Position numbers and translations under genes: made by a program. 64,000 nucleotides of DNA from Squalus acanthias (taxonomy: Eukaryota), in the NCBI GenBank assembly GCA_030390025.1, contig CM059429.1:145142001-145206000 (forward strand). The letters run 5' to 3'. A model generated the notes under the pieces. The model was not told where the DNA came from. It saw only the letters and a program-made list of their open reading frames with translations, and made no database searches. Shown here in pieces: positions 2,548 to 47,324 of this stretch (position 1 is the stretch's first letter; every line of letters starts with the position of its first letter).

Positions 2548-2874
2548 CAGCCACTTGTAGCAAGATGTTCTTTTCTTGTTTTCCTTCTGACGTACTGATG
2601 TAACATTGGTACTCTCCTTCATCAGCCTTGTTAATTCCTGTAAGGTGAAGGGATGCATTTCCTTTCATTATCTCATTGATAAAAAGCTCTGTTCTTCCTT
2701 TGTAGTTTGGATATTGGTTGGATAGCTGATCTGTTTTTCGATAAAAGCTGTGAACAACAATGGTCTCCCTGGGCAGTTTGCGCATCCAGTGAAGCACTAT
2801 TCCAGCCAATTGGGTTGGTCGAAATGTACATGGCAAAACAACGTCCTTGGAAATGATAGCTGTGATGCTCCCAT
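2548..2874 (-). CDS. IgV exon of a B7-family gene (HHLA2/B7-H7-like; B7-H3/B7-H4 not excluded)
   Basis: Inside ORF 2522-2944. Acceptor ttttAG at 2876-2875, donor G|GTCAGA at 2547; 327 bp, phase 1-1. Protein DVVLPCTF..IVLHW..VVHSFY..DQLSNQYPNYKGRTELF.NEI.KGNASL....ADEGEYQCYIST carries the B7-type V-domain signature. No following C-domain exon was recognised in 1-2547. Confidence 0.88.
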
Positions 2875-3292
2875 CTAAAAGGCAACAGAGTGAAATTAGT
2901 TTTTTCTGGTGAAAAGTCTTCGACATTTGTGATCCAATTCCCAAGTTTCAAAAACCGACCAATACCTCTTCACGTTGAACTGAAGAATCACCAGCAATAA
3001 TTTCACAGAGTGGACCATTTCTTTGAGGGGTAATGGAACACAGTGGCATAATAGGGGGGCTGTGACTCTAAATGTAGAATTGAATTGATACAGAGACAGC
3101 TGTGAACTAGATGTGACTCAAATTATTTGTTGGTGATTGAAAAGTGCAAAAATATTGCTATGTGCCAACACCATTTTCACTTATTTTGAATGGTATTTCT
3201 GGTCATCCTAATGATCATAGAATCATAAAAATTATAGCACCAAAGGAAAGCACTCAGCCCATCGTCCCTCTTCAACTAGAGCTATCTACTCT

Positions 3293-3601
3293 GGGGCTGA
3301 TTTTAACTTGGCTAAATTGGCATGAACGAGACACTAACGGCCTAAAAATGTGGCCGGTAGACTTACTGTCCCGATACTGCCGACACTGCAGCTGCCGCTA
3401 CTTGTAAAGGGGGCTACAGCTGGGGAGCCGAAGGACTTATCTTGCTGCCGGTCGGGCAACTCCCATCCGCCCGATATGGCACTGGCCTGAATCCAGCAAG
3501 CTGCATCGGAACGCCCATTAGTTCTATTTCAATGCGGCACTAGCCCTTTGCTATTGGCACAGGTAGGCGGCTGGCATGCTCTGAAAGTTAAAATCTACCC
3601 C
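3293..3601. mobile_element. MITE (PIF/Harbinger-type), intronic
   Basis: TIRs GGGGCTGATTTTAACTT / AAGTTAAAATCTACCCC; 3-bp TSD TCT (3290-3292, 3602-3604). Confidence 0.7.
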
Positions 3602-4070
3602 TCTAATTCTATTTAGCCGCCCTTTCCCATACCCTTTATATCCTTTATGTTAAAACACTTATCTAATTCCCTTTTAAAGGATGTTATAGGAGTTGTTTTT
3701 CTAGCACACCACCAACTGTACGATAAATTAGAGGCAATAGGCCCAGGGTTTTGGAGTATGCACTGCCAATTGGCAAGATTTCCCACCATGAGTACATGCT
3801 GAATAGTCAGTTGTGGTAAAGCACTATTAATAATTGTTCTAATAACGCTCTGTGTGAAAATAATTCTTCAAACTTCCCCTTTATTTTGTTAACTTCCCCT
3901 TTATTTTAGTGAGTTTATACCCCCTTTTACCAATATGCCAATTTTTAACTATTTACCTTTTGATGACCTTCCATAATTTTTAAAACCTCGATTGATCCTA
4001 ATTTAAACTTCAATGTTCTTATAGTTAAAGTCAACATGCAAATATAAAACATCAATAAAATGGATGTCAC

Positions 4071-4128
4071 CTGTACTTAGTAGTTGAAAAATTCCGAAAA
4101 CACAAAAGCAGACTATTCGATGTAACAT
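4071..4128 (-). CDS. Signal-peptide exon of the B7-family gene
   Basis: ATG at 4128 gives MLHRIVCFCVFGIFQLLST+G|GTGACA (58 nt, phase 1). It joins the IgV exon in frame (T-D-GSIT). The exon starts at 4241 after a ttttttttttaattgtAG acceptor, implying a further upstream non-coding exon. Confidence 0.8.
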
Positions 4129-4489
4129 CTTTGTGCCTCATTCACTTCACAATAGGTTGCATCCAAACGTATCTTCGCAAATAAAGAATCTTCATCTAAT
4201 CTCAGTGGAAGAGTCCAGATTATCCCTTAAGAATCATCTTTCTACAATTAAAAAAAAAATTCTCACATCTAAGAACAGTCATAAATTATAGAAATTAAAA
4301 CAGATTATGCTGAAAGCACTCAGCAGGTCCAAATCTTGGTAATAAATGATAGACCTTGGCAGCCAATGTTCTAAATAACCTTGGCAGTCAAAGTTCTAAA
4401 TCGGTTTCATAGTACAAAGGTACAAACAACAATTATCAGCTTGTTATTGCTAGCATTGGCAAAAGAGCTTTTTGTGTGTAGGCCTCCTC

Positions 4490-4812
4490 CATCATCCTTA
4501 TAGTAGACCTCCTCCAGCCCTACAACCCTCCGAGATGACTGAGTTCCTCCAATTCTGGCCTCTTGTGCATCCCCGATTTCCATCGCCCCACCATTAGCTG
4601 CCGTGCTTTCAGCTGCCAAGGCTCTAAGCTCGGGAATTCCCTCCCTAAACCTCTCTGCCTCTCTCTCCCTCCTTTAATACACCCCTTAAAATCTACCTCT
4701 TTCACCTGTCCTGATATCTCCTTATGTGGCTGCGTGTCAAATTTTGTCTGATAACGCTCCTGTGAAGCGCCTTGGGATGTTTTAGGCGCTGTATAAATGC
4801 AAGTCGTTGTTG
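4490..4812 (+). mobile_element. L2 LINE 3' fragment
   Basis: Ends in gtgaagcgccttggga...ggcgctgtataaatgcaagtcgttgttgt, the same tail as the L2 at 50740-50803. Confidence 0.65.
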
Positions 4813-5849
4813 TCATTATTGCAGCACCACTGAAAGCAGGACATACTGAGGGCAATTTTCACATTCCACAAGTGGATCAGCCATCTCTTATAGAACCCAC
4901 CTGATTTTCATTTCTTTGATATCAGCGCAACAGAAATACCCTCACTGTTCCAATCAGGGTTGTTCGATTTGAGCGCACAAATGTGATCAAACCTGATCAT
5001 AAGATACCTCCTCAAAAGTTAGTTTAAAAAAAAAATGGAAGTCTGTGTTTGCCCCCATTTTCTTCTGTGTCTTATGACGTGGAGACATTTGTTATTAAGA
5101 TTCAGTGAAGCAAACATCAGAACTGAACTCTGCCCCACCCCGTTCTGCCCCTTGGTAAAATGTGACAACCCTATTAGTATCGTGGTAAAAGAACGTGAGA
5201 GTAGTTGTCAGATCAAACAATATATAAAATCACAGTTTGTGCAAAAGCAGACTTTTGTAACGTGTGCCACGACACTTCAGGTTGTAAAATACAAAGCACT
5301 GCAGACCAGCTCATTACCACTTTGCTCTCTCGGAAAACATTTTTCCCGAAAAAGGCAAAACAAGCAAACAAAGCCACAATAACTACAGGATATTTTAGTG
5401 ACAGTGACGTTTGGCTGAAATGGCTATACATTAGGTTAATGGAATATACATTTCGAATTCTCACCATACCGTATTATCAGTTGGCATTGCTGTAGTATCA
5501 AAGTTTGTGTGGACACAAAGATTGTGCAAACTCTGTGAAAGTTGTCCTATGGTTACTCCAGTGGGTTAGGCATTAACTAAATCACACCAATAGTAAACTT
5601 TGAAATTACCTTAAATCTTTCGAAATGCATGGCATAAAACTAGTGTGTCCTGAAGATAAAATGGAGCATGACGAGTAATGTCTCTGATTGCCAAGTCCAA
5701 AGCTGTCAGGTGAATAGCAGGATAGGACCGAGGCTTTAGTGATCATGAAAATTTATCAAAAATATTAATAATCATAATAATTATTGTCTCCATCTCACAG
5801 GGCATTGAAGTAAGCTGAAAATTGATTTTTAATTTTCTGTCCTCTCTGT

Positions 5850-6357
5850 TGTGGAAAGAAACCACTCGGAGTCACGGGTAGGCTGCGACACGAGAGAAAC
5901 TTTATTACAAGCTTGCAGGGGAGAGCCTTCAGTGTACCAAAGCCTCTCAAATTTATAATGGTCGTGGCAGTTTATACATAATCAAGCTACTACCGATAAT
6001 TGCTCAACTGTTAATTACCGGTTACTTAGGCATTGACAGATATTTCTTGTTATCTCAACTGTCCCAGTCTCAAGGCCCTTACATCTGCTTTCCTGTGATT
6101 CTTTTAACCACAGTATCTGGCCTTCAGTTCCCCACTTATCTTTTGCTCATTATCCTTGGTTTCAAAGACAAAAGCATATTTTCGTTCAAACTGCTGACGC
6201 CTACAGTTTTTAACATCTTAGCTTACATATGGCCAAGCTTCCCATCATGCCTTGCGATTACAATGACTTGTTACTAACATGGCTACTGACATTATTACAG
6301 CATACATTAAAAGGTACTGACTTACACGTGATAGAATAATCACAGGTTCTCACCACA
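5850..6357 (-). mobile_element. Possible solo LTR
   Basis: TGTGG...CCACA termini. Minus-strand TATA-like (~5975) followed by AATAAA (~5900), as in U3-R-U5. No TSD found. Confidence 0.35.
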
Positions 6358-6469
6358 TCAGCATATTGAGCAATGCTACTATCCTATTAGCCCCTCAAGC
6401 CAACCACTGGCCCCCCGGGTTGCCACTTCACTCCCCTAAAGTATGACAGGTTAACTGAACAACAAGTAT

Positions 6470-7477
6470 GGCGGGGATTTTCTCAAGGGAGGCGAGTTGG
6501 GGGCGGGGGCCTCCAAGACGGGCAGGAAATCCAGGAGGCCGGGTTTCCCGCAGGCCCTGCTGACTTTAAAGACAGGGCCTAATTTGAATGTGAGGCCTCG
6601 GATTTCCGCCCGCAGCCAGCCAGATTGAAAGGCTGGCTGGCTGCGGGCGGGTAGGCCTCAGATAAGAGGGGTCGGTCCAGGGGAGGGATCGCGGGGTCGG
6701 CATGGTCGGGGATTGGTGAGGGGGGAGGGGGTTGGCAGGGTGGGTAAGCTGGGGATCAGGGATCGGGAGGGGGTTGGAGGAGTGGCAGGAGAGCGGGAGG
6801 GGGTGTTCGGCTGGGGATCGGAGGGATCGTGGATCGGGAGGGGGTTGGAGGAGCGGCAGGGGATCGGGAGGGGGTGTTCGGCTGGGGATCGGCGCGGGGT
6901 GGGGGGTGTTTGGGAATTGGCATGGGCTAGGTCGGGGATCGGGATGGGGGGTCAGGGATCGCGGGGGAATGACGGAGGGGGGAGAGAGGATCGGGGCCGG
7001 CCACCGGAGGATTGTGGCCGGCCTCAGGATCATCAGTGTGGTTGGGGGGTGGGGGGGGGGTAGGGGGGAGGGAGGCCTCATGATGGGGATCGGAGGCCTC
7101 ATGGGGGGGGTCTACGATCGTGCGGGGTGAGTTAGGCAGGGACCCTGGATTCAGGAGGTAGGTATAAAGCCACTTACCTCCTGGATGCGGCAGTCCCCGC
7201 ATCGGTTTAACTGCCGGGTTTCATGAATTGTGTGAAACGCGTCCACATGCAGTTAAATTCAAAATGGAGGTGAAAAAAGAGGCTGTCAGCCTCATTACAA
7301 TATTTAAATTATGGTACCGCCTCCTGGGAGCAGGTTGGTCACCCGCCCCCCGTCCCGCCTCCGCTAAAACCGGAAGTGGACGGGTTGGAGGCGGGATCAG
7401 GTCAGGAATCCCAATTTTAACAATTTAACTGCCCCCACGCTCCAAACCCACCCCTGTTTTAGGGGAAAATTCTGGCC
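6470..7477. mobile_element. G-rich non-autonomous DNA transposon (Harbinger-type MITE)
   Basis: TIR-like GGCGGGGATTTT / AAAATTCTGGCC. Homologous to 17695-18323. Internal GGGGATCG-type repeats. Confidence 0.6.
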
Positions 7478-7552
7478 TGTGAAGCCGAAAATAATTCTGA
7501 TAAAATCATTAACTAAACAAATGATTCCATAAAAAAATGAAAGTTGCAAAAT

Positions 7553-9255
7553 GGGCTGGATTTTACGAACCTCGGTGGGTCCGGGGCGGGCGATGTTGGT
7601 GGCGGGTCCCGGCCTCGCTGCTGGCTCCAGCCCGCTGTGTAGAATGATTTTACGTTGATTGGGCTTGGGCCAATTGAAGGAAGCGGGTCTGATGATGTCA
7701 TTTGATGATGCGTCATCAGCCGGTTTCCTTAAAGGGACCATGTGCAAATTTATTTTGACATTTGTGCTGTCAGTGTTCCACAGCATTGAGGTGCTGCAAA
7801 CACTGACAAGCACTGCACAGAGGTGCAGGGCTGCACCCAGGCTCTCCCATGACTCCCTCCATATGCTTATGGAGCGAGTCACAGCACACAGGGAGGTTCT
7901 CTTCCATTCCAATGGGCGGAAGAGACCTCCCCAGGAGACCAACGCAGCCTGGTTGCTCATTGCACAGGAGGGCACAAGCAGGGATGTCGTCAGGAGGACC
8001 AGGCTGCAGTGGAGCAAACCTTTCAATGATCTCAATAGATCACGAAATGTTACTGCAAATCCAAACTCAACCTCATTCTGCTGTGCCACTCATCATATCC
8101 CCATCACTCTGCCTTCCCTACCCTACTCCTGCACAGCCTTACTCACACCAACTTACCTTGTACCTCCACCAATCCCTCTCTATCTACATTATCACTTCCC
8201 CATCTCACTAGCCACCACTCATACTCACCCTGATTCTAGTTCAATCATACCAACTAACAACACACAAGGGTAGTCACTTGGGTGTTTTAGCCAATGTTCT
8301 TGTGAAGCTTCTGTTAATGTGCTGTCAAACATTGAAACCTTTATTTTCAACACTTTGCGTTCTTGGACAGATTTATGTGTACCTTTGGAAGTGGCTTAGT
8401 GAGATGCAGTGAATGGTGAGACATAACGGTACCCCCCGCAATGCTGATGAGTGTGAAAGGAATGGCTTGGACATTGTAGGGATGCTTTATGGTGTTGGTG
8501 TGGGGTGGTGCCAACCTGGCGCATCATGTGGCAGCCAGGGTGCACAGCATCAAGTGAAGTAAATCTGGCCATGGTGAGGCCATCCCTGGTGTCCAGGCAG
8601 CAATGTGGTTGGGTGCTGATGCCCTCTGTCCTGTGCAGCATCAGTTGATTGCGGAGAAGGTTGGTGTGGTTGTTGGTGCTGCTGGTGTGCCTGGTGATGC
8701 TGGTGTTTGGGCTGATTGTGGTGGGATTCTGAGGACTAAGGTGAGAGAATATAAAGTGCACCAATGCTGATGGAATAGATGGCAGATGAAGTAGAGATGA
8801 CAGAAGCGATCTGTCAATGGTGGAAGAGGTAATGAGGTTAGACTGGATGGAGACTTGTGTAAAGACTTGCAGCATTCTGAATCTGTAGTGGAAATGCAGT
8901 TTAGAGAAGCTAGTGGCTAAGGGAACATTTCTCAATCAGCTGGGAGCTTTGACTTGACACTTGAAGCTGTCAACTCATGAGCTGAAACAATGGCCACTGA
9001 CCTCCCGCCTCAGCTTCACTAACGAGGTCTAGGCACAGCAGGAAAACGGTGGGCAACCTGTCAAATTCAAAAAGCTGGGAAAAAAGCATTGTTATGTGAC
9101 TGTAAACAAGCCACTAATGATTTCAATTGCCTCCCCTGCTGCAGCATGTCGGGTCTGCTCAGCGCTGGCAGACCCAACATTTGGGAAAGGTGCGCGGCTT
9201 TCTCATCCGACCCGCCACCGATCGCGCCCGCTGACCCACCGGAAAATTCCCCCCC
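7553..9255 (+). mobile_element. Decayed PIF/Harbinger element with Myb/SANT-like ORF remnant
   Basis: ORF 7659-8273 contains RAAPRLSHDSL..LMERV..HREVLF...RKRPP....AW..IA...TS....RRT..QWSKPFNDL, resembling the Harbinger Myb/SANT protein. TIR-like ends GGGCTGGATTTT / AAAATTCCCCCC. Confidence 0.65.
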
Positions 9256-9442
9256 GATATCCGATATTCAACAAGAACAATAGCATCCATTGATAGAGTG
9301 CCTTTAACATAGGTGCTTATTAGAGGAGAAAAATGGACAATGAGCTAAAGAAGAAAAGGTTAGGAGCAGTAAGCAGAAGCTTGTGGAAGCGGGGTTTTGA
9401 GGAGGAGAGGTGATGGAATTTAGGATGGAAATTCCAGTGTGT

Positions 9443-12400
9443 TTTTTTAATTCAATCATGGGATGTAGGTGTACCTGGCAAGGCTAGCATTTATTGCCAT
9501 TGAGAAGGTGGTGGTGAGCTGCCTTCTTGAACCGCTGCAGTCTATGTAATGAAAGTGTTGCCACAGTGCTGTTAGGGAGGGATTTTGACCCAGCGACGAT
9601 GAAGGAACGGCGATATATTTCTAAGTCAGGATGGTGTGTGACTTGGTGGGGAACTTGGAGGTGATGATGTTCCCATGTGCCTGCTGCCCATGTACTTCTA
9701 GGCATTTGAGGTCGCGGGTTTGATAGGTGCTGTCGAGGAAGCCTTGGCCAGTTGCTGCAGTGCATCTTGTAGATGGTACACACTGCAACCATGGTGCGCC
9801 GGTGGTGGAGGGAGTGAATGTTGTTTAAGGTGATGGATGGGGTGCCAATCAAACTGGCTGCTTTGTCCTGGATGGTGTTGAGCTTCTTGAGTGTTGTTGG
9901 AGCTACATTCATCCAGGCAAGTGGAGAGTATTCCATCACACTCCTTACTTGTGCCTTGTAGATGGTGGAAAGGCTTTGGGGAGTCAGGAGGTAAGTCACT
10001 CACCGCAGAATAGCCAGCCTCTGACTTGCTCTTGCAGCCACAGTATTTTTGTGGCTGGTCCAGTTAAATTCTGGTCAATGGTGACCCCCAGGATATTGAT
10101 GGTGGGGGATTCAACGATGGTAATGCCATTGAATGTCAGGGGGAGGTGGTTAGACTTTCTCTTGTTGGAGATGGTCATTGCCTGGCACTTGTGTGGCACA
10201 AATGTTAGTTGCCACTTATCAGCCCAAGCCTGAATGTTGTTCAGGTTTTGCTGCATGCGGGCATGGACTGCTTCATTATCTGAGGATTTGCAAATGGAAC
10301 TGAACACTGTGCAATCATCAGCGAACATCCCCACTTCTGACCTTATGACGGAGGGAATGGTCATTGATGAAGCAGCTGAAGATGTTTGGGCCTGGGACCC
10401 TGCCCTGAGGAACTCCTGCAGCAATATCCTGGGGCTGAGATGATTGGCCTCCAACAGCCACAACCATATTCCTTTGTGTTAGGTATGACTCCAGCCAGTG
10501 AAGAGTTTTCCCCCTGATTCCCATTGACTTCAATTTTACTAGGGCTCCTTGATGCCACACTCAGTCAAATGCTGCCTTGATGTCAAGGGCAGTCACTCTC
10601 ACCTCACTTCTAGAATTCAGCTCTTTTGTCCATGTTTGGACCAAGGCTGTAATGAGGTCTGGAACTGAGTGGCCCTGCAGAACCCAAACTGAGCATCAGT
10701 GAGCAGGTTATTGGTGAGTAAGTGCTGCTTGATAGCACTGTGGATGACACCTTCCATCACTTTGCTGATGATTGAGAGTAGACTGATGGGGCGGTAATTG
10801 GCTTTATCCTGCTTTTTGTGGACAGGACATATCTGGGCAATTTTCCACATTGTCGGGTAGATGCCAGTGTTGTAGCTGTACTGGAACAGCTTGGCTAGAG
10901 GCGCGGCTAGTTCTGGAGCACAAGTCTTCAGCACGACAGCCGGGATGTTGTCGGGGCCCACAGCCTTTGCTGTATCGAGTACGCTCAGCTGTTTCTTGAT
11001 ATCACGTGGAGAGAACTGAATAGGCTGAAGACTGGCTTCTGTGATGGTGGGGACCTCAGGAGGACGTCGAGATGAATCATCCACTCAGCACTTCTGGCTG
11101 AAGATGGTTGCATATGTTTCAGTCTTCTCTTTTGCACTCATGTGCTGGGCTCCGTCATCATTGAAGATGGTGATGTTCATGGAACCTCCTCCTCCCATTT
11201 GTTGTTTAATTGTCCACCACCATTCATGACTGAATGTGACAGGACTGCAGAGCTTTGATCTGATACGTTGTTTGTGGGATTGCTGAGCTCTGTCTATAAC
11301 GTGCTGCTTTCGCTGTTTAGCATGCATGTAGTCCTGTGTTGTAGCTTCATCAGGTTGGTACTTTCTTTTTAGGTATGCCTGGTGCTGCTCCTGGCATGCT
11401 CTTCTACACTCCTCATTGAACTAGAGTTGGTCTCCTAGCTTGATGGTAATGGTAAAGTGAGGGATATGCCGGGCCATGAGGTTACAGATTGTGGTGGAAT
11501 ACAATTCTGCTGCTGTTGATGGTCCCTGAATGCCCAGTTTTGAGCTGCTAGGTCTATTCTGAATCTATCCCATTTAGCACAGTTGTGGTGCCACACAGCA
11601 CAATGGAGGGTGTCCTCAGTGTGAAGATGGGACATAGTCTCCACAAGGACTGTGCGATGGTCACTTCTACCAATACTGTCATGGACAGATGCATCTGCGA
11701 CAGGCAGATTGGTGAGGACGAGGTCAAGTAGGTTTTTCCCTTGTGTTGGGTCTTTCACCACCTGTCGCAGGTCCCGTCTGGCAGCTATGTCCTTCAGGAC
11801 TCGGCCAGCTCGGTCAGTAGTGGTGCTATCGAGCCACTCTTGGCAATGGACATTGAAATCCCCCACCCAGAGTACATTCTGTACCCTTGCTGCCTTCAGT
11901 GCCTCTTCCAAGTGGTGTTCAACTTGGAGGAGTACTGATTCATCAGCTGAGGGAGGGCGGTAGGTGGTAATCAGCAGGAGGTTTCCTTGCCCATGTTTGA
12001 CCTAATGCCATGAGACGTCATGGGGTCTGGAGTCAATGTTGAGGACTCCCGGGACCACTCCCTCCCGATTGTATACCACTGAGCGGCCAGCTCTGGTGGA
12101 TCTGTCCTGCCGGTGGGATAGGACATACCCAGGATAGTGATGGAGGAGTCTGGAGGTTGGCTGAAAGGTATGATTCTGTGAGTATGACTATGTCAGACTG
12201 TTGCTTGACTAGTCTGTGGGACAGCTCTCCCAATTTTGGCACAAGTCCCCAGATGTTAGTGAGGAGGACTTTGCAGGTTCGACTGGGCTGGGTGCGCCGT
12301 TGTCGTGTCCGAAGCCGGTGCCTAGGTCGATGACGGGTGGTCCATCCGGTTTTATTCTTATTATAGTTTCTCGTACAACTGAGTGGCTTGTTAGGCCATT

Positions 12401-12560
12401 TCAGAGGGCAGTTAAGAATCAACCACATTGCTGTGGGTCTGGAGTCACATATAGGACAGACCGGGTAAGGACGGCAGATTTTCTTCCCTGAAGGACATTA
12501 GTGAACCAGATGGGCTTTTATGACAATCCAGTAGTTTCATTGTCCCCATTACTGCTACTA
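9443..12560 (-). mobile_element. Non-LTR retrotransposon (CR1/Jockey group, APE + RT), frameshifted
   Basis: Successive minus-strand ORFs: TNIWGL..DIVILTESYL and WVGDFNVH..LLDLVLTN..SDH (APE); NYRPISLLSIISKVME, GVPQG, FADD (RT). Confidence 0.9.
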
Positions 12561-12683
12561 GCTTTTTATTCCAGATTTATTGTGGCAGCAGATGGGCTGA
12601 AGTGTGGGGCCTGGGAGGCTGAAGGCACAGCCTCCAATGGTGAGGCGAAGGCAGCGGGGATGCACAAGAGTCAGAGGAACAGA

Positions 12684-13460
12684 CTGGGGGAAAAATTCAG
12701 CTGCTTGCGCCTCCCGTTAGCGCCTTAAATGGGCGCTAATGGGGCGTAAAGCAGCTAACGCCCGGGCGCAGCGCCGCCCACGCCTCCCGAAAAATTTAGT
12801 GGGAGGTTAGCGGCGGCGGCAGCCGGTAGCGCCCTGTGGCGCTGCGCCGCCGGCGATGACGTCATCGCCGTGCGCAGCGCCCTGCTCGCGCCCCGGCCGT
12901 GATCTTCAGTCGCGCCCCCTGATTTACCGCCAGACGCTATGTCCGACGGGTTCAGGGGGGCGTACGTGCGGCCGGGGCGGCGATATTTAAAGGGGAGGTG
13001 GCAGGCGGCCATTTTTGTTGCTGGCCGCCTGCCAGCACCTGCCCCCGTTGCTGTCCCCGGCCCCCGTGAAGCCCCCCCAGCGTGAAGTGCCGGCTGCGCT
13101 CCAAGAGCCCGGCACTTCTCTTGAGTGCCGGGCTCTTTTGCCGGCACTCCCGATCCCTGGGAGCCCAGCTGGGCCCCGGTTCGCGCTGCGCAAGGCCCCT
13201 CCCCTTTAAGAAGGGGAGGAAGGCCTGCAATACCGCGGCGCGACGTGCCGCAGCGCGTGGCGCTGCGGCACGTAGCGCCAGGATATTCACTCGCAGCGCC
13301 CCAAGAGGGATGCGGGGTGCTTCCAGTTGCGACCCGCTTCCCTCTTGGGGCGCAACCACTGAAGTTCCGGCGCGGGGCCGCTAATTTTTTCGGGGCGCTA
13401 AAAGTCGCGCCCCGGCGAGGTTAGCGCCCCAAATGGGGCGCGACTCAATTTTTACCCCAG
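12684..13460. mobile_element. GC-rich MITE
   Basis: TIRs CTGGGGGAAAAATT / AATTTTTACCCCAG, TSD AGA. Left end shared with 22719. Interrupts an L2 remnant. Confidence 0.7.
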
Positions 13461-13685
13461 AGAGTTTGAGTGGAGATTGTAAAGCTGGAGATTACAGAGA
13501 CAGGGTATGGAATGGAGGGATATAAACAAAATGATTAAAATTCAGGCACTGGGGAACAGGAGCCAATGCAGGTAAGGAGGACAGGGGTGATGTGTGGACA
13601 TGACTTGGATCGAGATAGGATATGGGCAGCCGAGTTTTAGAAGAGCTTACGTTTGAGGAGTTTGGAGTATGGGAGGATCGTTGGC

Positions 13686-14398
13686 AGATCGTGACGTCAG
13701 TCGAGTGCGCAACGCCCCGGAGTGGATGTTGAGTGGCGCCCCCTGCCTTACCGCCTGCCGCTAGCAACGACAGATTGAGGGGAGCATTTTGCAGTCAGGA
13801 AGGGACTGGGGGAGCGCTATTTAAAGGTGACCGCTTCCTGCCTTTTATTGTTGGTGACATTTTTGAACCATGCATTCTGAGAGAGAGAGAGACTTCTGGA
13901 GAGATTCAACGCTGTGTGAAGGAGTTTTGGGTACTGAGCAGCACTTTGCAGGTTCATTTTGATTTGCCCTTCCTTGTATTAATTTAGAAGAGACTGTGGG
14001 GGCTGCACTCTGAGCTCTTTCCCTGGTTCTCTCCATTGTTCTTTCCAGCAGATTTGATGTACAGGTCTCTCCAGGCCGAGATTCAAGGCTGCAATGAGCA
14101 GGATGTGGATGGAAAGCAAGATCAACCCTCCCCTTTAAGAACTGGCTGGCACCACTGTGTGTGTGTTCCACTGCTGACTGACATCACATGAGCTTCGCCA
14201 GCGCTCTGAGGTAGCGCCTCACTCCTCGGCCTTTGCGCCTTAAGGCAGTTGTGAAGCGCCTGATTTAGCGCTCCAGTCACCTCCAGGGGCGATAAAAGTC
14301 AAGTTTGCAGTCGGAGGCGATAATTAGCGCCAGGCGCTAATCTTTGCGCCCGGCCGATAATTGCGCCCCAAATGGGGCGATACTGAATTTCTCCCCCC
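13686..14398. mobile_element. MITE family copy, truncated on the left
   Basis: Homologous to 22719-23564 and (inverted) 59831-60679. Right TIR AATTTCTCCCCCC. Confidence 0.8.
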
Positions 14399-15177
14399 AT
14401 GACCCTAGCTTTCATATCTGTTGCGCCCCATAAGTTGGTGTCAAAGGACGTAACAGACCAACAAAATGGACAAAGACCTGTTACACTGTCTTTCTGCCCT
14501 GTTTGCACATTGCGCACAGGTTCACTGCTATTCCAAACAGGGATAGGAAACTCAAGCCTGAAACAAGGAGAAGCTTCAATAAAATATTAAAATGAGGGCA
14601 GAATGCCATTGTTTTATCCTGCATGCTATTTTCTGGCATTTTAGCACGCAGGGTGCTAGGTGCAAATCATATCTACATATTATGAGTGTCCGGGGTTGCT
14701 AGAGGATCTGCTGTAGATGGAGGTTCTTTCAACGTGTGTAGTAAGGAGATTCAGTTAGAAGTTTTAAGGCCATTTCAGGGCTGCTGTTTTTGTTATGTTT
14801 TCTGCTGCCATGAGTCTTTGTGGTAATTACTCTGCTGCTTCTATTGTTTCCCTACCAGCTTGCAGTATCCATTAGAACCACCAATGGGCATTCTGATGTG
14901 AATTTCCCCGTATATATGAGCTTTTTGGAGGGGGAACGAGGAAAAGCAATGGAGAGATGGCAGGTGAGTAAGGCTGTTCTGTGCCCAACCACTAACACCT
15001 CTACCCACATATACAGACAAAAGTGCACCTATCACTCTTTGGCAAAGGATCAGTACCTGCAGAGGCACCAGCTTTCAAGATAGGTTGTGGCAGCAGGCCC
15101 AGTGGTACAGATACGACATGTCACTGCCTTATTAACCGTAATGCTGGACAGTTCTTCGGAAGCACCCCAATCACAAT

Positions 15178-15941
15178 GGCCCAGAAATTAAACATCAATG
15201 GTTGCCGCGGGGGTAAGGATTCCCCGCGATATCGCACTCCGCGCCTACCTTTTTGTTTCGGGCCCACACGAACTTCAGTTTGAGGGCCTCTCCCTGTTGC
15301 CGGCGTGCAGTGCTTGCGTGTCCCAGAGGCGCAATTAGTTCGTGCGAGCTCTGGGATCACGTGGGACACTTAGAGCCAATGGCAGCACACCATCTTTCAT
15401 TCATAGTTTTGACAGCAAGGGCTGTCAAAGCTATGAATACTACAAGCCCCCAAAAGAACAGCTAAACCTCAATGAAATTTAAAAAAAAAGCCATCACATT
15501 AATAAAATAACTATAGTTAAATAAATTAACCAATTTAAACAAAAAATTAAATTTTTGAAAAAATTTAAATTCTTTTTAAAAGTTATAAAAATAAACTTAC
15601 CTTTCTTTAAAGTCTCTAAAAAAGATAAACCTGTTGAAAAAATTTAAAATAACACTTAATTAACTACTTACCTTGTTAAAAGGGGGTCCTATGCCTGCTT
15701 TCTTTATGTGTAAAATCTTCACCACTTACCTGCGCGTTCAAACCTGAAAAAAAAACTAAGTGCACTGCGTGCACACAACCTGTAGCGCGCACGCGGTTCA
15801 CTTAGGAACCGCCCCCTTTGCAATACATGAAGTGCCGGTTTCCCGCGCATGCGCAGTGCATGCAGGAAACCGGCAATTTGGGATCTAATACGCGAGAGTA
15901 CACAGTGCGTACTCTCGCGTATTAGGTCTAATTTTCGGGCC
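15178..15941. mobile_element. MITE with internal hairpins
   Basis: TIRs GGCCCAGAAATT / AATTTTCGGGCC. 17-bp perfect stem at 15885-15925. Confidence 0.55.
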
Positions 15942-28447: not shown

Positions 28448-28485
28448 TTACAAGCTTTCGGAGCTGTCGCTCCTTCGTCAGGTAA
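28448..28485 (-). ncRNA. Minimal hammerhead ribozyme motif
   Basis: Reverse complement of the 30808-30845 motif. Confidence 0.75.
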
Positions 28486-31602: not shown

Positions 31603-31742
31603 TCATATATCATAAGGGTGCTGTTGGCCAAGCAGTGAGTATATGACATCATTATCATTGTTAGATTGCTCTCTCGCTGGGTCTCTCGCATTTTGTTCAC
31701 TTTCAGGCGTGGCTGTTCTCCTTGATAATAAAACCTTTTTTT
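31603..31742 (-). CDS. Terminal cytoplasmic exon (ITIM) of the VJ-C1 receptor
   Basis: Acceptor tttgttgcAG at 31744-31743. Phase-1 frame (not the ORF-track frame) reads KKKVLLSRRTATPESEQNARDPAREQSNNDNDVIYSLLGQQHPYDI*. VIYSLL fits (S/I/V/L)xYxx(I/V/L). Confidence 0.78.
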
Positions 31743-32061: not shown

Positions 32062-35000
32062 TTTAAACAGAGTGCTGCGAGTTGGGTGAGTCAGGGAGTT
32101 AGGTGAGGAGTGGAAGGAGGAGCTCCCTTGCTTCGCCTTTGTTTTTCCTAACTTTTCACCCTGTAGGAATTGGTTCTTACTTTACACCAAGGAAAGAGTC
32201 CGAGAGCGGGAGCAATCAAACAACAACAACTGCGAAACCGCTAAAGTGACGTCACAACCAGGGAAGGAGCTGATTGGTAAGTAGGACTTGGTGAGTATTT
32301 CTACAGTCCAGTCGTTAAAGTAAAAGTAAGGTCTCTAGTTTAGAGTAAGTAGTGTTTAAAGGGAAGTAAGGTCCCTAGTGTATTTAATATTCTTTAATTT
32401 AAAGGAAGTAAAGGGTGTAAATTAAGGGTAGGACATGGCAGGGCAGCTCAGCAGCATGGAGTGCTCCTCCTGTGCTATGTGGGGAATCAGGGACACTTTC
32501 GGTGTCCAGGGCGAACACATGTGCAAGAAGTGTCTCTAGCTACAGCTACTCGAAATCTGTGTTTCAGAGCTGGAGCTGCGGCTGGAGTCACTGTGGAGCA
32601 TCCGCAAAGCTGAGATCTTCGTGGATAGCACGTTTAACGAGGTGGTCACACCGCAGGTAAAGAGTGCACAGGCAGACAGAAAATGGGTGACCGCCAGACA
32701 GAGTAAAAGAACTAGGAAGGTAGTGCAGGAGTCCCCTGGGTCCATCTCCCTCTCCAACAGATTTTCCATTTTGGATACTGCTGGGGGAGATGGTTTCTCA
32801 GGGGAATGCAGCAAGAGCCAAGTCCGTGGCACAACGAGTGGCTTAGCTGCACAGGAGGGGAAGAAAAAGAGTGGGAGAGCAATAGTGATAGGGGGATTCT
32901 AACGTAAGGGGAACAGATAGACGTTTCTGTGGCCGCAGGCATGACTCCAGGATGGTATGTTGCCTCCCTGGTGCCAAGGTCAAGGATGTCACTGAACGGC
33001 TGCAGGGCATTCTGAAGGGGGAGGGCGAACAGTCAGAGGTCGTGGTTCACATTGGTACCAACGACATGGGTAGAAAGAGGGATGAGGTCCTGCAACAAGA
33101 ATTTAGGGAGCTAGGTAGCAGATTAAAAAGCAGGACCTCAAAGGTTGTAATCTCTGGATTACTGCCGGTGCCACATGCTAGTGAGTATAGGAATAGGAGG
33201 ATAGAACAGATGAATGCGTGGCTAAAGAGTTGGTGCAGGAGGGAGGGCTTTAGTTTCCTGGATCACTGGGTCTGCTTCTGGGGAAGGTGGGACCTGTACA
33301 AGTCGGACGGGTTGCACCTGAACTGGAACGGGACCAACATCCTTGTGGGGAGGTTTGCTAGTACTGTTGGGGGGGGGTTTAAACTAACTTGGCAGGGGGA
33401 TGGGATATGGAGTGGAGCTATAGTAGGGGGTGATGCACAGTCAAATATAGAGGAAAAAACAAGTCAGTCTGGAAGGCAGAGCAAATATGTAATGGCACAA
33501 GAGAGTATGGCAAGGCTGGATGGCATTTATTTTAATGCAAGGAGTCTTGCAAGTAAGGCAGATGAATTGAAGGTGTTGATGAACACATGGGAGTATGATA
33601 TTGTTGCTATCACAGAGACATGGTTGAGGGAGGGGCAGGACTGGCAGCTCAATATTCCGGGGTATAAAATCTTCAGGCGAGACAGAGGGGGGTGTAAAAG
33701 AGGAGGGGGTGTCGCAATATTAATCAAGGAGTCAATTACTGCTGTAAGGAGGGATGATATCTTTGCAGCTTCCTCTAATGAGGCCATATGGGTAGAACTT
33801 AAAAACAAAAAGGGGGCAAGCACTTTGCTGAGAGTGTACTATAGGCCCCCAAACAGTCAGGGGTTGATAGAGGAACAGATATGTAGGCAAATCTCAGAGA
33901 AGTGTAAAAATAATAGGGTAATAATAGTAGGGGATTTCAACTTCCCCAATATTAACTGGGATAGTCAGAATGTGAAAGGCTTAGAGGGTGCAGAATTCTT
34001 AAAGTGCATCCAGGAGAGCTTTTTGAGCCAGCATGTAGAAAGTCCTGCAAGAGAGGGGGTGGTACTGGACCTAATTCCAGGGAATGTAGCCGGGCAAGTG
34101 GTAGAAGTGTCAGTAGGAGAGCATTTTGGTGACAGTGACCATAATTCGGTGAGATTTAAGGTAGTCATGCAAAAGGACAAAGATGGACCGGAAATAAAGG
34201 TTTTAAATTGGGGGAAGGCCGATTTTAATATGATAAGGCAGGATCTTGCTAAAGTGGACTGGGATCAGCTACTTATAGGAAAATGCACATCAGAGCAGTG
34301 GGAGTCTTTCAGAAAGGAAATAAAGAGAGTACAACGCCAACATGTTCCCGTAAAGGTCAAGGGTGGGACCAACAAGCCCAGGGAACCCTGGATGTCAAGG
34401 GATATACAAGAATGGATTAGGAAAAAAAGGGAGGCTTTTGGCAGATACAAAGGACTAAAAACAATGGAAGCCCTAGAGGAGTATAGAAAGTGTGGGGGGG
34501 TACTTAAAAAAGAAATTAGGAGAGCGAAGAGGGGGCATGAAAAAACACTGGCGGGCAAAATAAAGGAAAATCCCAAGGTGTTTTATAAGTATATTAAGGG
34601 CAAGAGGATAACCAGGGAAAGAGTAGGGCCCATTCGGGACCAAAGTGGCAATCTGTGTGTAGAGCCGGAAGATGTGGGTGAGGTTTTAAATGAATATTTT
34701 GCATCTGTGTTCACTATGGAGAAGGACGATGTAGGCATAGAAATCAGGCAGGGGGATTGTGATATACTTGAACAAATTAGTATTGAGAGGGAGGAGGTAC
34801 TAACGGTTTTAGTGGGCTTAAAAGTGGATAAATCCCCAGGCCCAGACGAGATGTATCCCAGGCTGCTGTGTGAGGCAAGGGAGGAGATTGCAGGGGCTCT
34901 GACACAAATTTTCAGAACCTCTCTGGCCACAGGGGAGGTCATGATGCGGAGATGCCGGTGTTGGACTGGGGTGGACAAAATTGAGAGGTCGCACAGCACC

Positions 35001-36698
35001 AGGTTATAGTCCAACAGTTTTATTTGAAATCACAAGCTTTCAGAGCTTACTACTCCTTCGTCGGGTGAAGTAAAAAGATACAGAATCGCCAAAGCATATA
35101 TAGATAGAGAACAATGCATGTGTACCTTACAATTGCAGACAACTAAATTAAATCATCCTGACTACCTCGGCAGATAGTCAGGATGATTTAATTTAGTTGT
35201 CTGCAATTGTAAGGTACACATGCATTGTTCTCTATCTATATATGCTTTGGCGATTCTGTATCTTTTTACTTCACCCGACGAAGGAGTAGTAAGCTCTGAA
35301 AGCTTGTGATTTCAAATAAAACTGTTGGACTATAACCTGGTGTTGTGCGACCTCTCAATTTTGTCCACAGGGGAGGTGCCAGAGGACTGGAGAACAGCTA
35401 ACGTAGTACCATTATTCAAGAAGGGTAGTAGGGATAATCCAGGGAATTACAGGCCAGTGAGCCTAACATCAGTGGTTGGGAAATTATTGGAAAAAATTCT
35501 GAGGGACAGAATTAGTCTCCACTTGGAGAGGCAAGGATTAATCAAGGATAGTCAGCATGGCTTTGTCAGGGGGAGATCATGTCTAACCAATTTGATTGAA
35601 TTTTTCGGAAGTGGTGACTAGGTGTGTGGATGAGAGTAGTGCAGTTGATGTAGTCTACATGGACTTCAATAAGGCTTTTGACAAAGTCCCACATGGGAGA
35701 CTGGTCAAGAATATAAGAGCCCATGGGATCCAGGGCAATTTGGCACATTGGATCCAAAATTGGCTTAGTGGCAGGAGGCAGAGGGTGATGGTCGAAGGTT
35801 ATTTTTGTGACTGGAATCCTGTGTCCAGTGGTGTACTGCAGGGATCAGTGCTGGGTCCTTTGCTGTTTGTAGTGTACATTAATGATTTAGATATGAATGT
35901 AGGAGGTATGATCAGTAAGTTCGCAGATAACAAGGCAAGGGAATACAAAATGAATGGTAGGACCCTAGGAAGGACAGAGTATCAGTGGGACCTTGGTGTG
36001 CATGTACATAGATCCCTGAAGGCAGCAGGACAGGTAGATAAGGTGGTTAAAAAGGCATATGGGATACTTGCCTTCATTAGCCGAGGCATAGAATATAAGA
36101 GCAGGGAGGTTATGATGGAGCTGTACAGAACGCTAGTTAGGCCACAGCTGGAATACTGTGTGCAGTTCTGGTCACCACACTATAGGAAGATGTGATTGCA
36201 TTGGAGAGGGTGCAGAGGAGATTCACCAGGATGTTACCTGGGCTGGAGCGCTTCAGCTATGAAGAGAGACTGGACAGGCTGGGGTTGTTTTCCTTAGAGC
36301 AGAGAAGGCTGAGGGGGGACCTGATTGAGGTGTACAAAATTATGAGGGGCATAGATAAGGTAGATAGAAAGGAACTTTTCCCCTTAGTAGAGGGATCAGT
36401 AACCAGGGGGCATAGTTTCAAGGTAAGGGGCAGGAGGTTTAGAGGGGATTTGAGGGAAAACCTTTTCACCCAGAGGGTGGTTGGAATCTGGAATTCACTG
36501 CCTGAAAGGGTGGTAGAGGCAGGAACCCTCATAACATTCAAGAAGCATTTAGATGAGCACTTGAAATGCCATAGCATACAAGGCTATGGACCAAGTGCTG
36601 GAAAATGGGATTAGAATAGACAGGGCTTGATGGCTGGCACAGACACGATGGGCCGAAGGGCCTCTTTCTGTGCTGTATAATTCTATGACTCTGACTCT
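32062..36698 (+). mobile_element. Near-full-length CR1 LINE (ORF1 with Cys motifs + SGNH esterase; ORF2 APE + RT)
   Basis: ORF1 remnants CSSC..CKKC, VVVHIGTND, DGLHLN. ORF2 YFNARS, ITETW, GDFN.P, SDH, NYRPVSLTS, DF.KAFDKVPH, QGSVLGP. Internal deletion at ~35930, ttctatgactctgactct tail. Confidence 0.93.
34940..35364. mobile_element. Penelope fold-back insertion (near-perfect palindrome) with two hammerhead motifs
   Basis: Arms 34971-35164 / 35175-35368, 10-nt loop. TSD CCACAGGGGAGGT (34927-34939, 35365-35377). Motifs at ~35030-35068(-) and ~35271-35309(+) have the variant core CCGACGA. Confidence 0.9.
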
Positions 36699-39036
36699 AA
36701 GGCAAATGGTATGTTGGCCTTCATTGCAAGAGGATTTGAGTACAGGAGCAAGGATGTCTTACTACAGTTATACAGGGCCTTGGTGAGACCACACCTGGAG
36801 TACTGTGTGCAGTTTTGGTCTCCTTACCTAAGAAAGGATATAGTTGCTATAGAGGGAGTGCAACGAAGGTTCACCAGACTGATTCCTGGGATGGCAGGAC
36901 TGTCGTATGAGGAGAGATTGGGTCGACTAGGCCTGTATTCACTAGAGTTTAGAAGAATGAGAGCGGATCTCATTGAAACGTATAAAATTCTGACAGGGCT
37001 AGACAGACTGGATGCAGGGAGGATGTTTCCCCTGGCTGGGGGGTCTAGAACGAGGGGTCACAGTCTCAGGATACGGGAGAGGACATTTAGGACTGAGATG
37101 AGGAGAAATTTCTTCACTCAGAGGGTGGTGAACCTGTGGAATTCTCTACCACAGAAGGCTGTGGAGGCCAAGTCACTGAATATATTTAAGAAGGAGATAG
37201 ATACAGATTTCTCGACACAAAAGGCATCAAGGGATATGGGGAGAGAGCGGGAATATGGTATTGAGATAGAGGATCAGCCATGATCATATTGAATGGCGGA
37301 GCAGGCTCGAAGGGCTGAATGGCCTACTCCTGCTCCTATTATTCTATGTTTCTATGTTTCTAAAAGATGCAGCGGGCAAATAATGTCAACTGCAGTATGG
37401 AGAGTTTGTTTTAAAATGAAAGTTAGATCAATTCAATTGTGTAGTGTAGTGTAGTGTACAAACACAGCACTGAATAGCAAAAGAAGAAGAAAAACTGCAA
37501 TAACCAGAAATCTGAAACAAAAACATGAAATGCTGTAAATATGCAGTAAGACAATCAACATCTGTAAAGAGAAAAGACAGGTCATGATTTTTCTGGTGTG
37601 CACTCTTCACCAGAAGGGCAGACTGAAAGATAATGGGCATCTTAGTACGGTTAGAAAATTCAGAGGGAAAAAGAGAAAGAGGGAGAGAATCAATAAATCA
37701 CACAGGGGAAGTAAATAGGTTGAATGACCTGCAAACTGCTTAATAGAAAACTGTTAGAGGTGGTGACAAAACAGTCCAAGAAGGGAGTCAGAGATGGAGC
37801 ATGTAACAGTGAGGAATGAGGAATTGGAATCTTGGTAAATGAAATCCTTGAGAAAGAGAGAGAGAGAGCAGGAAGCAGCATCGTCAAAGTCATCAATGTA
37901 TTAGAGGAAGAGGTCAGGAAGGGTGCCTGAGTAGGAATGGGAACAAAGAATATATCCTACAAAAAGACAGGCCTAGCTGGGATTCATGTAGATTCCCATA
38001 ACAACACCTTTTATCTGGAGGAGGTGAGTGGTGTTAAAAGAAAAGAAAAAGCAAAAGTTGTAAATTCTGGAACTCTGAAAATGCTGGAACTCAGCAGGTG
38101 AGTCAGCATATATGGAGAGAAGAGACAAGTTAACAATTCAGGCGAAATCTGCTGAGTGTTTCCAGCACTTATTGGAATTAAAACAGAGGTTGCTCAAAGT
38201 GATAACAAGTTCAGCCAGGTACAGAGGGTGGTGGTGGACAGGGACTGGTTAGCCTATTTATCAAAGAGGAACTGGAGGGCTCAGAGACTATCTTAGTGAG
38301 GGATGTAGAGAGACTACATGTCTGTGGTGAAAAGTTGACCAAATAGAGATGCAAAGAACAGTGATCCCAGTTTGAATAATTGAGTATGCTGTCCATTAAT
38401 AAAAGGGTCTCCTACATATATCTGCCGCCTCACCCACCTCATTATGCACTGACTTAACTATGTCTGAGCCATATATCTGGGCCTTTTGGATAGTAGGAAC
38501 AATTAATGCCCTTTGAAGTGGCCTAGCAAGCCATTCAGTTGCCTTTAACATAGAAAAAATGCCCCAAGATGTTTCACAGAGACGTAAAGAAAAAATGAAT
38601 GCCGAGTCAAAGAAAGAGATATTAGGAGGGGTAATCAAAAACTTATTCAAAAAGGTGAGTTATAAGGAGGGTCTTAAAGGAGGAGACAAAGATGGAGAGG
38701 TGACGAGGGTTACAGAAGAGATTTCAAACTGTGGGACCTAGGCGGCTGAAGCCATGGCTGCCAATAGTGGGGCGAAGGGAGGGGAGATGCACAACAGGCC
38801 AGAATCAGAGGAAAGGAGAGTTCAGGGAGTGGAGGGGTTGTAGGGCTGGAGGAAGCTATAGAGATAGGGAAGAGCAATGCCATAAAGGGATTTAAGTGCA
38901 AGAGATGCTCTGGCTACGATCAGATAGATAAGAGTGGAACTAAGCGAGGGTAGTCCCACTGAGCTGGACAATGAAAGAGGATGGTGTGGTCGAAGACTTT
39001 GTCAAAGACTGCACAGAGATCGAAGAGGATAAGGAG

Positions 39037-40064: not shown

Positions 40065-40169
40065 TTGAAATTGAACATGTACGAAGTACTGCAACTACCA
40101 GAAACACCATCAGCACAATTAGACTGCTAGCAGTTGATATTATCCACGATAGTTTATTACTGGCAGGAC
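40065..40169 (-). CDS. Transmembrane exon of the VJ-C1 receptor
   Basis: ttctcaacAG|...A|GTAAGT; 105 bp, phase 1-1. GPASNKLSWIISTASSLIVLMVFLVVAVLRTCSIS, no charged residue in the helix. Confidence 0.85.
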
Positions 40170-43298: not shown

Positions 43299-43604
43299 CT
43301 TGGTTACGAACAGAAATCCGTTCAGTGATGGGTGCAGACAGTGTCGAGTGGTTCACCTGACAGGAATAATTTCCACTTTCATTCCACTCAAATCCAGAAA
43401 GATTCAGGAAACTTGTGATGGAGAATGAGCCGTCACTGTTGGAGTAAAGGGTCCCATTCTCAGTCCCATTGATGATTAACTGTCCATCTTTAAACCAGGA
43501 CACTTGAATGCTGCCAGGATAGAACTCCAGTGATGAGCAGACTAGCTGTACACCTTCATTAGGGTAAGGCAGAGTCTCTGCTCTTAACTGGACTGTTGGT
43601 TGAG
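43299..43604 (-). CDS. Ig C1-set exon of the VJ-C1 receptor
   Basis: ttttcAG|...G|GTAAGA; 306 bp, phase 1-1. AQPTVQL...VQLVCSSLEFYPGSIQVSWFKDG...NSDGSFSITSFL....W.....YSCQVNHSTL has the C1 motifs FYP, V.W, N.DG.F and CxVxH. Confidence 0.92.
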
Positions 43605-45766: not shown

Positions 45767-46129
45767 CTTCCACTGTTAGGTGCGTGCCTTTACCGACTGC
45801 TGTTTGTGTAGGGGGAGGTATTTCAATAGAAGCCTGACAGAAGTAAATGTCGGAGTCATTTACATGCAGATCGTAGAGTATTAAAGATGCGGAGTTTGTT
45901 GAGAGGTTCAGTGTAATGTTAGCACGTTCTGTACAACTCCCGATAGAAGTAAAATTAACTTTATTTTCCATATGTTGACACAACAGTAGTACATTGGTGT
46001 TTCTTGTCCATGTAATCCTCAACTGTTCTTCGTCTGTATAACTGTATGAACAGTTTATTTGTGCTTTGCCCCCCTTCAATACTCTGAGTTCTGATGGTGT
46101 CTGGGAGACAGTTAGATTTTTGCTTTTCC
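45767..46129 (-). CDS. Germline-joined VJ-type IgV exon, CD28/CD28H(TMIGD2)/NKp30-like
   Basis: ttttcttcAG|...G|GTGAGT; 363 bp, phase 1-1. LTVSQTP..INCSY..ITW..LC..SC..SLIL.DL.VNDSDIYFC..EIPPP...GKGTHLTVE. Confidence 0.92.
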
Positions 46130-46929
46130 CTGAAGAAAATATAGAAAGGATTAACAATATACAATCACCTATCAGCAATGAATATATTCTGTGCTGAATG
46201 TAAAGCTCCGTGAGGAGTTTGTAGTTCAGTGGGAATCAGGGGATTAATTGGGTCGGTAAAAAGACCAATCTGAATCTTTTCCTCTGAAAAGAAGTAAAAC
46301 TGTCCGGATACATTGATGGTTTAACACCTCGCAGCACCAATCTGTTAAATGAAATCTGTGCAAACCCATTTCTAAAATTGTAAAATTTAATAACCTCCTT
46401 TCTTCAAATCATTGCTTACTCCTGCGTAGTTTTTTTGATTTTTTTTTCTTGTTCTCAGCTCATTGTTTTGTGCCACATAATAGAGCCTGTCTTTCTTTGC
46501 GGTCTCTGCTGTCTTCCCTGTATCTGCTCTCTCCTTATCTATGTCTCCATACACTCGATATGATACGGAATAAAAATGGGCTTTGCTATAAGTGTCACTG
46601 GTAGACAATGTAAAAAAATACCTCCACATGTACAAAACTGGATGTAAAAGTGCAGATGGAGCAAAATATAGGATTTACCTTGACATATATTTGGTAAAAT
46701 TTTAACAATGCGTAGCTATATGATTCCATATATTTCACAAGTTCAAAAATCCCTCTCAGGAACAACTACTTGCACTTTTATACCATCGTTATAATGCAAT
46801 AAAACATCCCAAAGCACATCACAGAGACAAAAATAACCAGACGTTGAGCAGTGGTTGGAGGAGGATTAGGGCTGGTGACCAAGGCATGGCCAAAGAGGTC
46901 GGTTTTGAGGAGGCTACATGCACTAGACA

Positions 46930-46958
46930 AGAAATAAAGAAAGAGAGAAGGAAAGAGA

Positions 46959-46995
<37 letters not shown>

Positions 46996-47030
46996 GAAAG
47001 AATGAGTGAAAGAAAGAAAGAGAGAAAGAA
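46930..47030 (+). repeat. (GAAA)n / purine-rich microsatellite
   Basis: Direct reading of the tandem aaag run. Confidence 0.9.
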
Positions 47031-47260
47031 CTTGTAATTATATAGACATGAATACTATGGAAATTTTGGATACTTTTTTTAAGATTATTTGTGACTAATA
47101 CCTGTGGTAGAGCCCGTTTCTATGCAGTGATTTGTAAAGTTAAAGCACAGCATATTTCTGTTTGCCAGTAAGCCAAAACAACGCTTTTCTTTGTCTTCCT
47201 AATGCAATTAATAGTGACTGCAGTTACTCTGGTATGTTGTTAGACTTGAATTAGTCATAC

Positions 47261-47324
47261 CTGCAAATAGAAAGAAGTGAAGCAAAACACAAAGTCTGAT
47301 CACACGTGTTCCCAGAAGTATCAT
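47261..47324 (-). CDS. Signal-peptide exon of the VJ-C1 receptor
   Basis: ATG at 47324 gives MILLGTRVIRLCVLLHFFLFA+G|GTATGA (64 nt, phase 1). Exon acceptor ctatcttcAG at 47341-47340. Confidence 0.8.

Follow-up and report, generated by a model that had tools for sequence, protein, structure and literature searches.

A putative CD28H-related receptor gene with a C1 domain and an ITIM, and the 5′ end of a B7-type gene, in a 64-kb stretch of the Squalus acanthias genome

The CD28 family has been surveyed by Quiniou et al. in 2024 (PMC11599192), where nine members are described, every one with a single V domain; the survey came upon single-V receptors only, and upon no precursor of the family. The E-I-P motif in the FG loop of the V domain is conserved in CD28H (TMIGD2) from sharks to mammals and is also present in CD28HL1 and CD28HL2, and its extended form E-I-P-P-P is confined to reptiles and chondrichthyans (PMC11599192). 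On the ligand side, human HHLA2 binds TMIGD2/CD28H, and HHLA2 belongs with B7x (B7-H4) and B7-H3 to group III of the B7 family, according to a review (PMC10173190). Here we describe a window of 64 kb from Squalus acanthias (contig CM059429.1, positions 145,142,001 to 145,206,000; "the window" denotes this whole stretch), which contains no N and has a moderate GC content, and in which two genes of the immunoglobulin superfamily (IgSF), called gene A and gene B below, both lie on the minus strand. We consider it probable that they are two separate genes arranged head-to-tail, gene A encoding a CD28H-related receptor with a V domain, a C1 domain, and an inhibitory motif of the immunoreceptor tyrosine-based type (ITIM), and gene B being represented by the 5′ end of a B7-type gene.

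Gene A comprises five exons, with phase 1 at all the exon junctions. Exon 1 (47261..47324, 64 nt) carries the start codon and a hydrophobic leader, ends in phase 1, and is followed by a GT donor at 47260-47259. Exon 2 (45767..46129, 363 nt, phase 1-1) encodes a V-set domain (Pfam V-set 4e-14, V-set_2 (ICOS) 5e-10), and exon 3 (43299..43604, 306 nt, phase 1-1) encodes an Ig C1-set domain (Pfam C1-set 2e-18). A stalk and an uncharged transmembrane (TM) segment, recognised from a hydropathy scan and the sequence, occupy exon 4 (40065..40169, 105 nt, phase 1-1), while exon 5 (31603..31742) encodes the cytoplasmic tail, which bears the ITIM VIYSLL, and closes with the stop codon (31605-31603). The coding parts add up to 64+363+306+105+140 = 978 nt; with the stop counted in, this makes 326 codons and a predicted product of about 325 residues. 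The order of the exons is mirrored by the Pristis protein P0001, which, in searches run exon by exon (tblastn, phmmer), is collinear with gene A: V at residues 22-147, C1 at 145-242, TM at 245-273, and tail at 276-318. The V exon is 62% identical to this protein, the TM exon matches its residues 245-273 with an E value of 7e-4, and the tail exon matches its tail (E 3.5e-9) as well as that of P0008; the C1 exon is 85% identical to the Pristiophorus protein P0003. A two-codon upstream open reading frame (ORF), ATG AAA TGA (window 47322-47329, ATG at 47329), overlaps the start codon of gene A.

Two of the predicted junctions are seen in contigs assembled from public sequencing runs. Record 19 of run X3 passes from 45891-45767 into 43604-43407 (the V-C1 junction, 0 and 1 mismatches), and record 9 of run X2 passes from 43442-43297 into 40167-40065 (the C1-TM junction) and carries 52 further letters. 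The two-letter offset at the latter junction is an ambiguous 'gt', and the skipping of both introns falls on the predicted sites, the mismatches numbering 0-2. Such precise skipping is what spliced RNA would give, a processed DNA copy being the alternative. Contig depth is low over the exons of gene A, and the very high depth inside its introns falls on repeats: summed depths reach tens of thousands or more at 42240-42639, 44040-44839, and 45440-45639, segments that are read as repeats transcribed from elsewhere in the genome, not as gene A.

The V domain of gene A ends with ...YFCQASIEIPPP...GKGTHLTV, in which an IEIPPP FG loop is followed by the J-like GKGTHLTV. With CD28H/TMIGD2 and CD28HL1-3 it shares YxC followed by an E-I-P(-P-P) FG (CDR3-like) loop and then G-x-G, along with significant HMMER matches to TMIGD2 (PMC11599192 for the published motif). 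With CTLA-4, CD28, and ICOS it shares a proline-rich FG loop and a Pfam ICOS V-set match of 40 bits; in the printed alignment, EIPPP is placed residue for residue on MYPPP of chain 4n8p, a loop of the CTLA-4 type. This loop is the one by which CD28 and CTLA-4 bind their ligands. When the V exon was run exhaustively in HMMER, 132 proteins came back at E <=1e-3; YxC..EIP is found in 36 of them and EIPPP in 12, and the mammalian matches that were looked up all bear the NCBI name TMIGD2 (6 of 6: P0030, P0041, P0050, P0066, P0099, and P0120, with E values from 2e-7 to 7e-4). Owing to the EIPPP loop and these names, the label "CD28H-like" holds for the V domain. The preliminary description of the locus had applied a CD28/CD28H-like label to the receptor as such, which suits its V domain but not the whole gene, with its extra C1, its ITIM tail, and a coexisting V-only gene. 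The Pfam ICOS V-set was tried as a family marker and rejected, as it matches the window V and P0001 but neither TMIGD2 (P0030) nor the V-only ray protein P0022.

As a whole, gene A is a V-C1-TM-ITIM receptor gene, distinct from CD28 and from the CD28H orthologue, because a C1 exon is spliced in between V and TM, because the tail bears an ITIM and not YxNx, and because, in the sawshark Pristiophorus, a V-C1 protein (P0003) coexists with a V-only, YVNV-tailed one (P0129). A single extracellular V domain defines the CD28 family in the sense of Quiniou et al. 2024, and all the nine published receptors have this ectodomain (PMC11599192), to which gene A adds the C1. Its tail combines VIYSLL, in agreement with the consensus (S/I/V/L)xYxx(I/V/L), with a terminal PYDI; it contains no YxN, and hence neither the YxNx (GRB2/GADS) feature of CD28H nor the Y[E/D]SF of CD28HL1, and the TM segment carries no charge. 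An ITIM is shared with CD28HL3, but the latter was not found in Chondrichthyes (PMC11599192), and in the tree gene A falls in another group. CTLA-4, CD28, and ICOS differ from gene A in the lack of C1 and in their signalling motif, and no stalk cysteine is visible in gene A; like CTLA-4, however, it would be the inhibitory counterpart of an activating relative.

The tree of V domains was built from 68 rows, that is, the window V and 67 of the 132 matches (local domain E <=1e-8, at least 95 aligned query positions), the cluster-member duplicates P0133-P0141 having been removed beforehand. In this tree, the window V is placed among the V-C1 proteins of chondrichthyans (P0001-P0006), and the TMIGD2 clade (100/97 support) is separate. 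The "VC1" labels of four short rows (P0064, P0072, P0091, and P0128) are false, since the weak C1 match sits on their V domain, as it does in P0114.

The added C1 domain is of the antigen-receptor type. Its nearest solved chains are the Ig constant domain within 2rcj_C (41.5 bits) and the UrIg2 C1 domain (39.8 bits), which accounts for the name "Ig light chain-like" given by NCBI to relatives of gene A. The chain 2rcj_C is titled IgA1 heavy chain, and we take its matching domain to be that of a lambda light chain. UrIg, UrIg2, and the Ig light chains, which are VJ-C1 genes of the non-rearranging and the rearranging kind (PMC12227049), resemble gene A in providing the best solved matches to its C1, and the V of gene A likewise ends in a germline-joined J-like strand; UrIg2, however, has the layout V-C1-C2-C3, whereas a single C domain, a TM segment, an ITIM, and a CD28H-type V make up gene A. 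Sturgeon, gar, and turtle relatives are named SIRP-alpha by NCBI, and this receptor does resemble gene A in that a C1-set domain comes after a VJ-type V and in its signalling through ITIMs. SIRP-alpha, unlike gene A, is V-C1-C1 with four tail tyrosines. The 60 best-scoring solved chains for the V of gene A, and likewise those for its C1, include no SIRP chain.

The best matches to the V of gene A are proteins of 299-436 residues with V followed by C1; where the C-terminus is complete, a TM segment and then a short tail follow. V together with a strongly similar C1 is found in 11 of the 132 representative matches (local E 2e-14 to 6e-57). V-C1 representatives come from Callorhinchus, Pristis, Amblyraja, Hemitrygon, Pristiophorus, Stegostoma, Carcharodon, Chiloscyllium, sturgeon, gar, and sea turtles, and the cluster of Callorhinchus includes the GenBank protein record AFK11223.1 (NP_001279395). 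Gene A belongs to a V-C1 family spanning chimaeras, rays, and sharks, with the sturgeon, gar, and sea turtle proteins, annotated as SIRP-like, as more distant members. Its annotated orthologues are Callorhinchus LOC103180135, Pristis XP_051870431, Amblyraja LOC116980246, Hemitrygon XP_072900657, Stegostoma LOC125457037, Carcharodon XP_041066805, and Chiloscyllium chiPu_0002802. Since V-C1 proteins occur in both cartilaginous and bony lineages, the layout seems to be older than the split between cartilaginous and bony fishes. In the V tree, the forms from bony vertebrates cluster with a YVNV-tailed paralogue of Chiloscyllium (91/87 support). Near the C-terminus, (I/V)Yx(L/M)LGQ is common to gene A and the proteins of Pristis, Amblyraja, Callorhinchus, and Chiloscyllium. 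Literature searches found no publication on a V-C1 CD28H-like ITIM receptor or on a linked B7/HHLA2 gene, although the supplements of PMC11599192 could list such forms.

In Chiloscyllium punctatum, the YVNV-tailed V-C1 paralogue P0141 (GCC24401, chiPu_0002801) and the ITIM orthologue of gene A, P0037 (GCC24402, chiPu_0002802), have consecutive locus tags on one contig of 6.3 Mb and may be a tandem pair of an activating and an inhibitory receptor; the tags carry no information on a B7 gene beside them.

Gene A lies upstream of gene B. The distance of about 27 kb on the same strand that had been given for the two genes holds: the stop at 31603 and the ATG at 4128 can be read in the sequence, and 27,474 bases separate them. 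This spacer (4129..31602) is rich in transposable elements, with repeats and with ORFs for reverse transcriptase (RT) and endonuclease; its long ORFs are RT fragments (from long interspersed nuclear elements (LINEs) and others) or endonuclease fragments, the rest being without a Pfam match, and 8,904 of the 27,474 bases (32%) are found again elsewhere in the window. When phmmer was run on all 826 stop-to-stop fragments, from six frames, that reach 40 amino acids (aa) or more, Ig or receptor homology was confined to four exons of gene A and the V exon of gene B; none was detected in the spacer, where genes made of small spliced exons could escape such a scan. Since no other Ig-like fragment is present among the 826 pieces, the earlier statement that no recognisable gene lies between A and B stands at this resolution. 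The synteny markers of CD28H, fsd1 and stap2, were not recognised in the 64-kb window, in which no search with reference sequences was made for them.

Gene B begins with an exon (4071..4128, 58 nt) that carries the start codon and a leader, ends in phase 1, and is followed by a GT donor at 4070-4069. Its second exon (2548..2874) encodes a B7-type IgV domain (Pfam V-set 2e-12), for which CD276 (B7-H3) and VTCN1 (B7-H4) are the top solved matches; the best single-domain match is VTCN1 4gos, at 69 bits and about 40% identity as counted by hand in the printed alignment, and CD276 scores 37-42 bits per domain. As no further Ig exon is present at 1-2547, either on reading the sequence or in the phmmer scan, the gene continues beyond the start of the window. 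It had been described as an HHLA2/B7-H7-like gene, and a B7-like V is borne out by the B7-H4 match. HHLA2 itself has the layout V-C-V, while gene B is known here from its leader and V only. HHLA2 chains are missing from the top 60 solved matches of this V, and elephant TMIGD2 (P0030), used as a query, returned no solved TMIGD2 chain; both proteins are apparently absent from the solved set, so solved structures cannot settle an HHLA2 identity. A word-index search with the 140-aa ORF of gene B (region 24-133) gave three candidates, none of which passed, among proteins of 77-245 aa, a range outside which full-length B7 proteins fall.

On these grounds, the product of gene A is best pictured as a putative type I membrane receptor with a membrane-distal V domain of the CD28H-related E-I-P group, a J-like G-x-G, an antigen-receptor-type C1, an uncharged TM segment, and a short tail that bears one canonical ITIM. 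Its EIPPP loop, which aligns with the ligand-binding MYPPP loop of CTLA-4-type proteins, would contact the ligand, probably a member of the B7 family, and the phosphorylated ITIM would recruit SH2 phosphatases and thereby damp activation. The gene B product may be regarded as one candidate ligand; adjacency alone speaks for it, so the pair is offered as a hypothesis, not as a finding.

Several points weigh against the account given so far. Position -2 of the ITIM is canonical in the window and in Chiloscyllium only, the residues in Pristis (A), Amblyraja (T), and Callorhinchus (G) being non-canonical. Support is weak at the deep nodes of the V tree, near which long TCR-like branches are attached; among solved chains, V domains of JAML and TCR-alpha match the V of gene A with scores equal to or above those of CTLA-4, ICOS, and CD28. 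That the sequencing runs behind the spliced contigs are RNA is a guess, and gene B is seen only as a leader and a V. As for the proposed pairing of A with B, its support is adjacency in one genome.

The explanation of the adjacency that survives best is that it is incidental, arising in an IgSF-rich region, and that the partner of gene A lies elsewhere, for instance, a ligand shared with a tandem paralogue as in paired receptors; we hold this to be quite plausible, if a little short of probable. It draws on Chiloscyllium punctatum, where the ITIM form and the YVNV-tailed V-C1 paralogue stand next to each other by locus tag, and on the clustering that is common among IgSF genes. Against it, the phmmer scan detected no paralogue of gene A in the 16.7 kb upstream of it within the window; an incidental origin would, moreover, be compatible with binding.

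Genes A and B might instead be a cognate, co-evolving inhibitory receptor and ligand whose linkage is kept by selection, which we think unlikely. The position on the same strand at 27.5 kb, with no other recognised gene in between, is as such a pair would have it, and so are the relation of the V of gene A to CD28H, which in humans binds HHLA2, and the place of the gene B V among matches to B7-H3 and B7-H4, both of group III together with HHLA2 (PMC10173190). However, the human partners HHLA2 and TMIGD2 are unlinked by the same literature (PMC10173190), only a single genome shows the adjacency, gene A is not the CD28H orthologue, the V of gene B does not single out a subfamily, and a spacer filled with transposable elements gives no information on a shared regulatory unit. 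The A-B arrangement resembles NKR-P1/Clr insofar as the genes are neighbours, the A-B pairing being putative and of IgSF, not lectin, genes. NKR-P1 and Clr are linked receptor and ligand genes for C-type lectins whose binding has been demonstrated.

A reading of gene B as butyrophilin- or MOG-type, not B7, is rather improbable. MOG (48-51 bits) and butyrophilin (BTN, about 40 bits) do score above single CD276 domains, and BTN clusters are among the ESM Atlas neighbours of the gene B V at 0.92-0.95; yet CD276 (0.91) and HHLA2 (0.90) clusters are there likewise, in an overall range of 0.90-0.96 that does not discriminate, and B7-H4 leads the single-domain matches by 18 bits (69 against 51 for MOG). 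A grouping of exon 2548-2874 with butyrophilin/MOG, which the preliminary description had named as fatal to its proposal, is thus not favoured by the solved chains.

A bolder extension, which we regard as improbable, would see in gene A an ancient inhibitory counterpart of CD28H across Chondrichthyes that has kept an antigen-receptor-type C1 and binds the neighbouring B7 group III protein. Together with CD28H and its YxNx, it would make up an on/off pair like CD28/CTLA-4 that serves the HHLA2 axis, a part taken in primates by KIR3DL3, which is unrelated, and V-C1 would be the ancestral form that connects VJ-C1 antigen-receptor-like genes with the CD28 family. Finally, that gene A is nothing more than the orthologue in sharks of either CD28H/TMIGD2 or CD28/CTLA-4 is scarcely credible, for although the EIPPP loop, the TMIGD2 matches (2e-7 to 7e-4), and the Pfam ICOS V-set (5e-10) suggest kinship, the spliced-in C1, the ITIM in place of YxNx, the company of P0003 and P0129 in Pristiophorus, the position of the window V outside the TMIGD2 clade (100/97), and the single V by which the published family is defined (PMC11599192) all speak against it.

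The interest of the locus lies mostly in the architecture of gene A, to which the side-by-side pairing adds less. A CD28H-type V joined to an Ig-type C1 and an ITIM in a conserved receptor would widen the CD28 family and give a concrete link from it to the VJ-C1 genes. If the gene B product is the ligand, sharks would have a genetically linked checkpoint pair, and how the HHLA2/CD28H axis, absent in mice, evolved could then be tested in a basal vertebrate. With an incidental adjacency, the locus would be a case of ordinary IgSF clustering.

Other features of the window are mainly repeats. About 700 bases downstream of the gene A stop sits a retroelement (28393..30900, plus strand) whose RT ORF (28778-30565) is enclosed by a pair of inverted repeats of 399 bases, 98% identical, at 28393-28786 and 30502-30900; Pfam gave RVT_1 only for this ORF, whose C-terminal part is presumably GIY-YIG-like (Penelope-type). 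The 3′ flank of gene A also contains a long hairpin (31093-31199) between two mirrored ORFs, which matched miRNA precursor models on both strands below the gathering score (MIR396, 34 bits against 80). Rfam gave nothing at gathering score in the whole window, and no hammerhead family at E up to 1 in 28000-32000, where only the sub-threshold miRNA-like matches to this hairpin appeared. LINE fragments recognised from ORFs and Pfam (32952..37283, plus strand; GDSL-lipase-like, endonuclease, and RT) lie antisense in the last intron of gene A, and their C-terminal ORF type is seen again at 20807-21418 (minus) and 24730-25437 (plus). Fragments of a long terminal repeat (LTR) retrotransposon pol gene occupy 61132-63967 (minus), with RT, RNase H, and the zinc and core domains of integrase. 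An unclassified repeat is present in three copies that are 88-92% identical (13684-14397, 22780-23542, and 59831-60657) and contain an ORF without a Pfam match, and GC-rich flanks lie beside it at 12700-13400.

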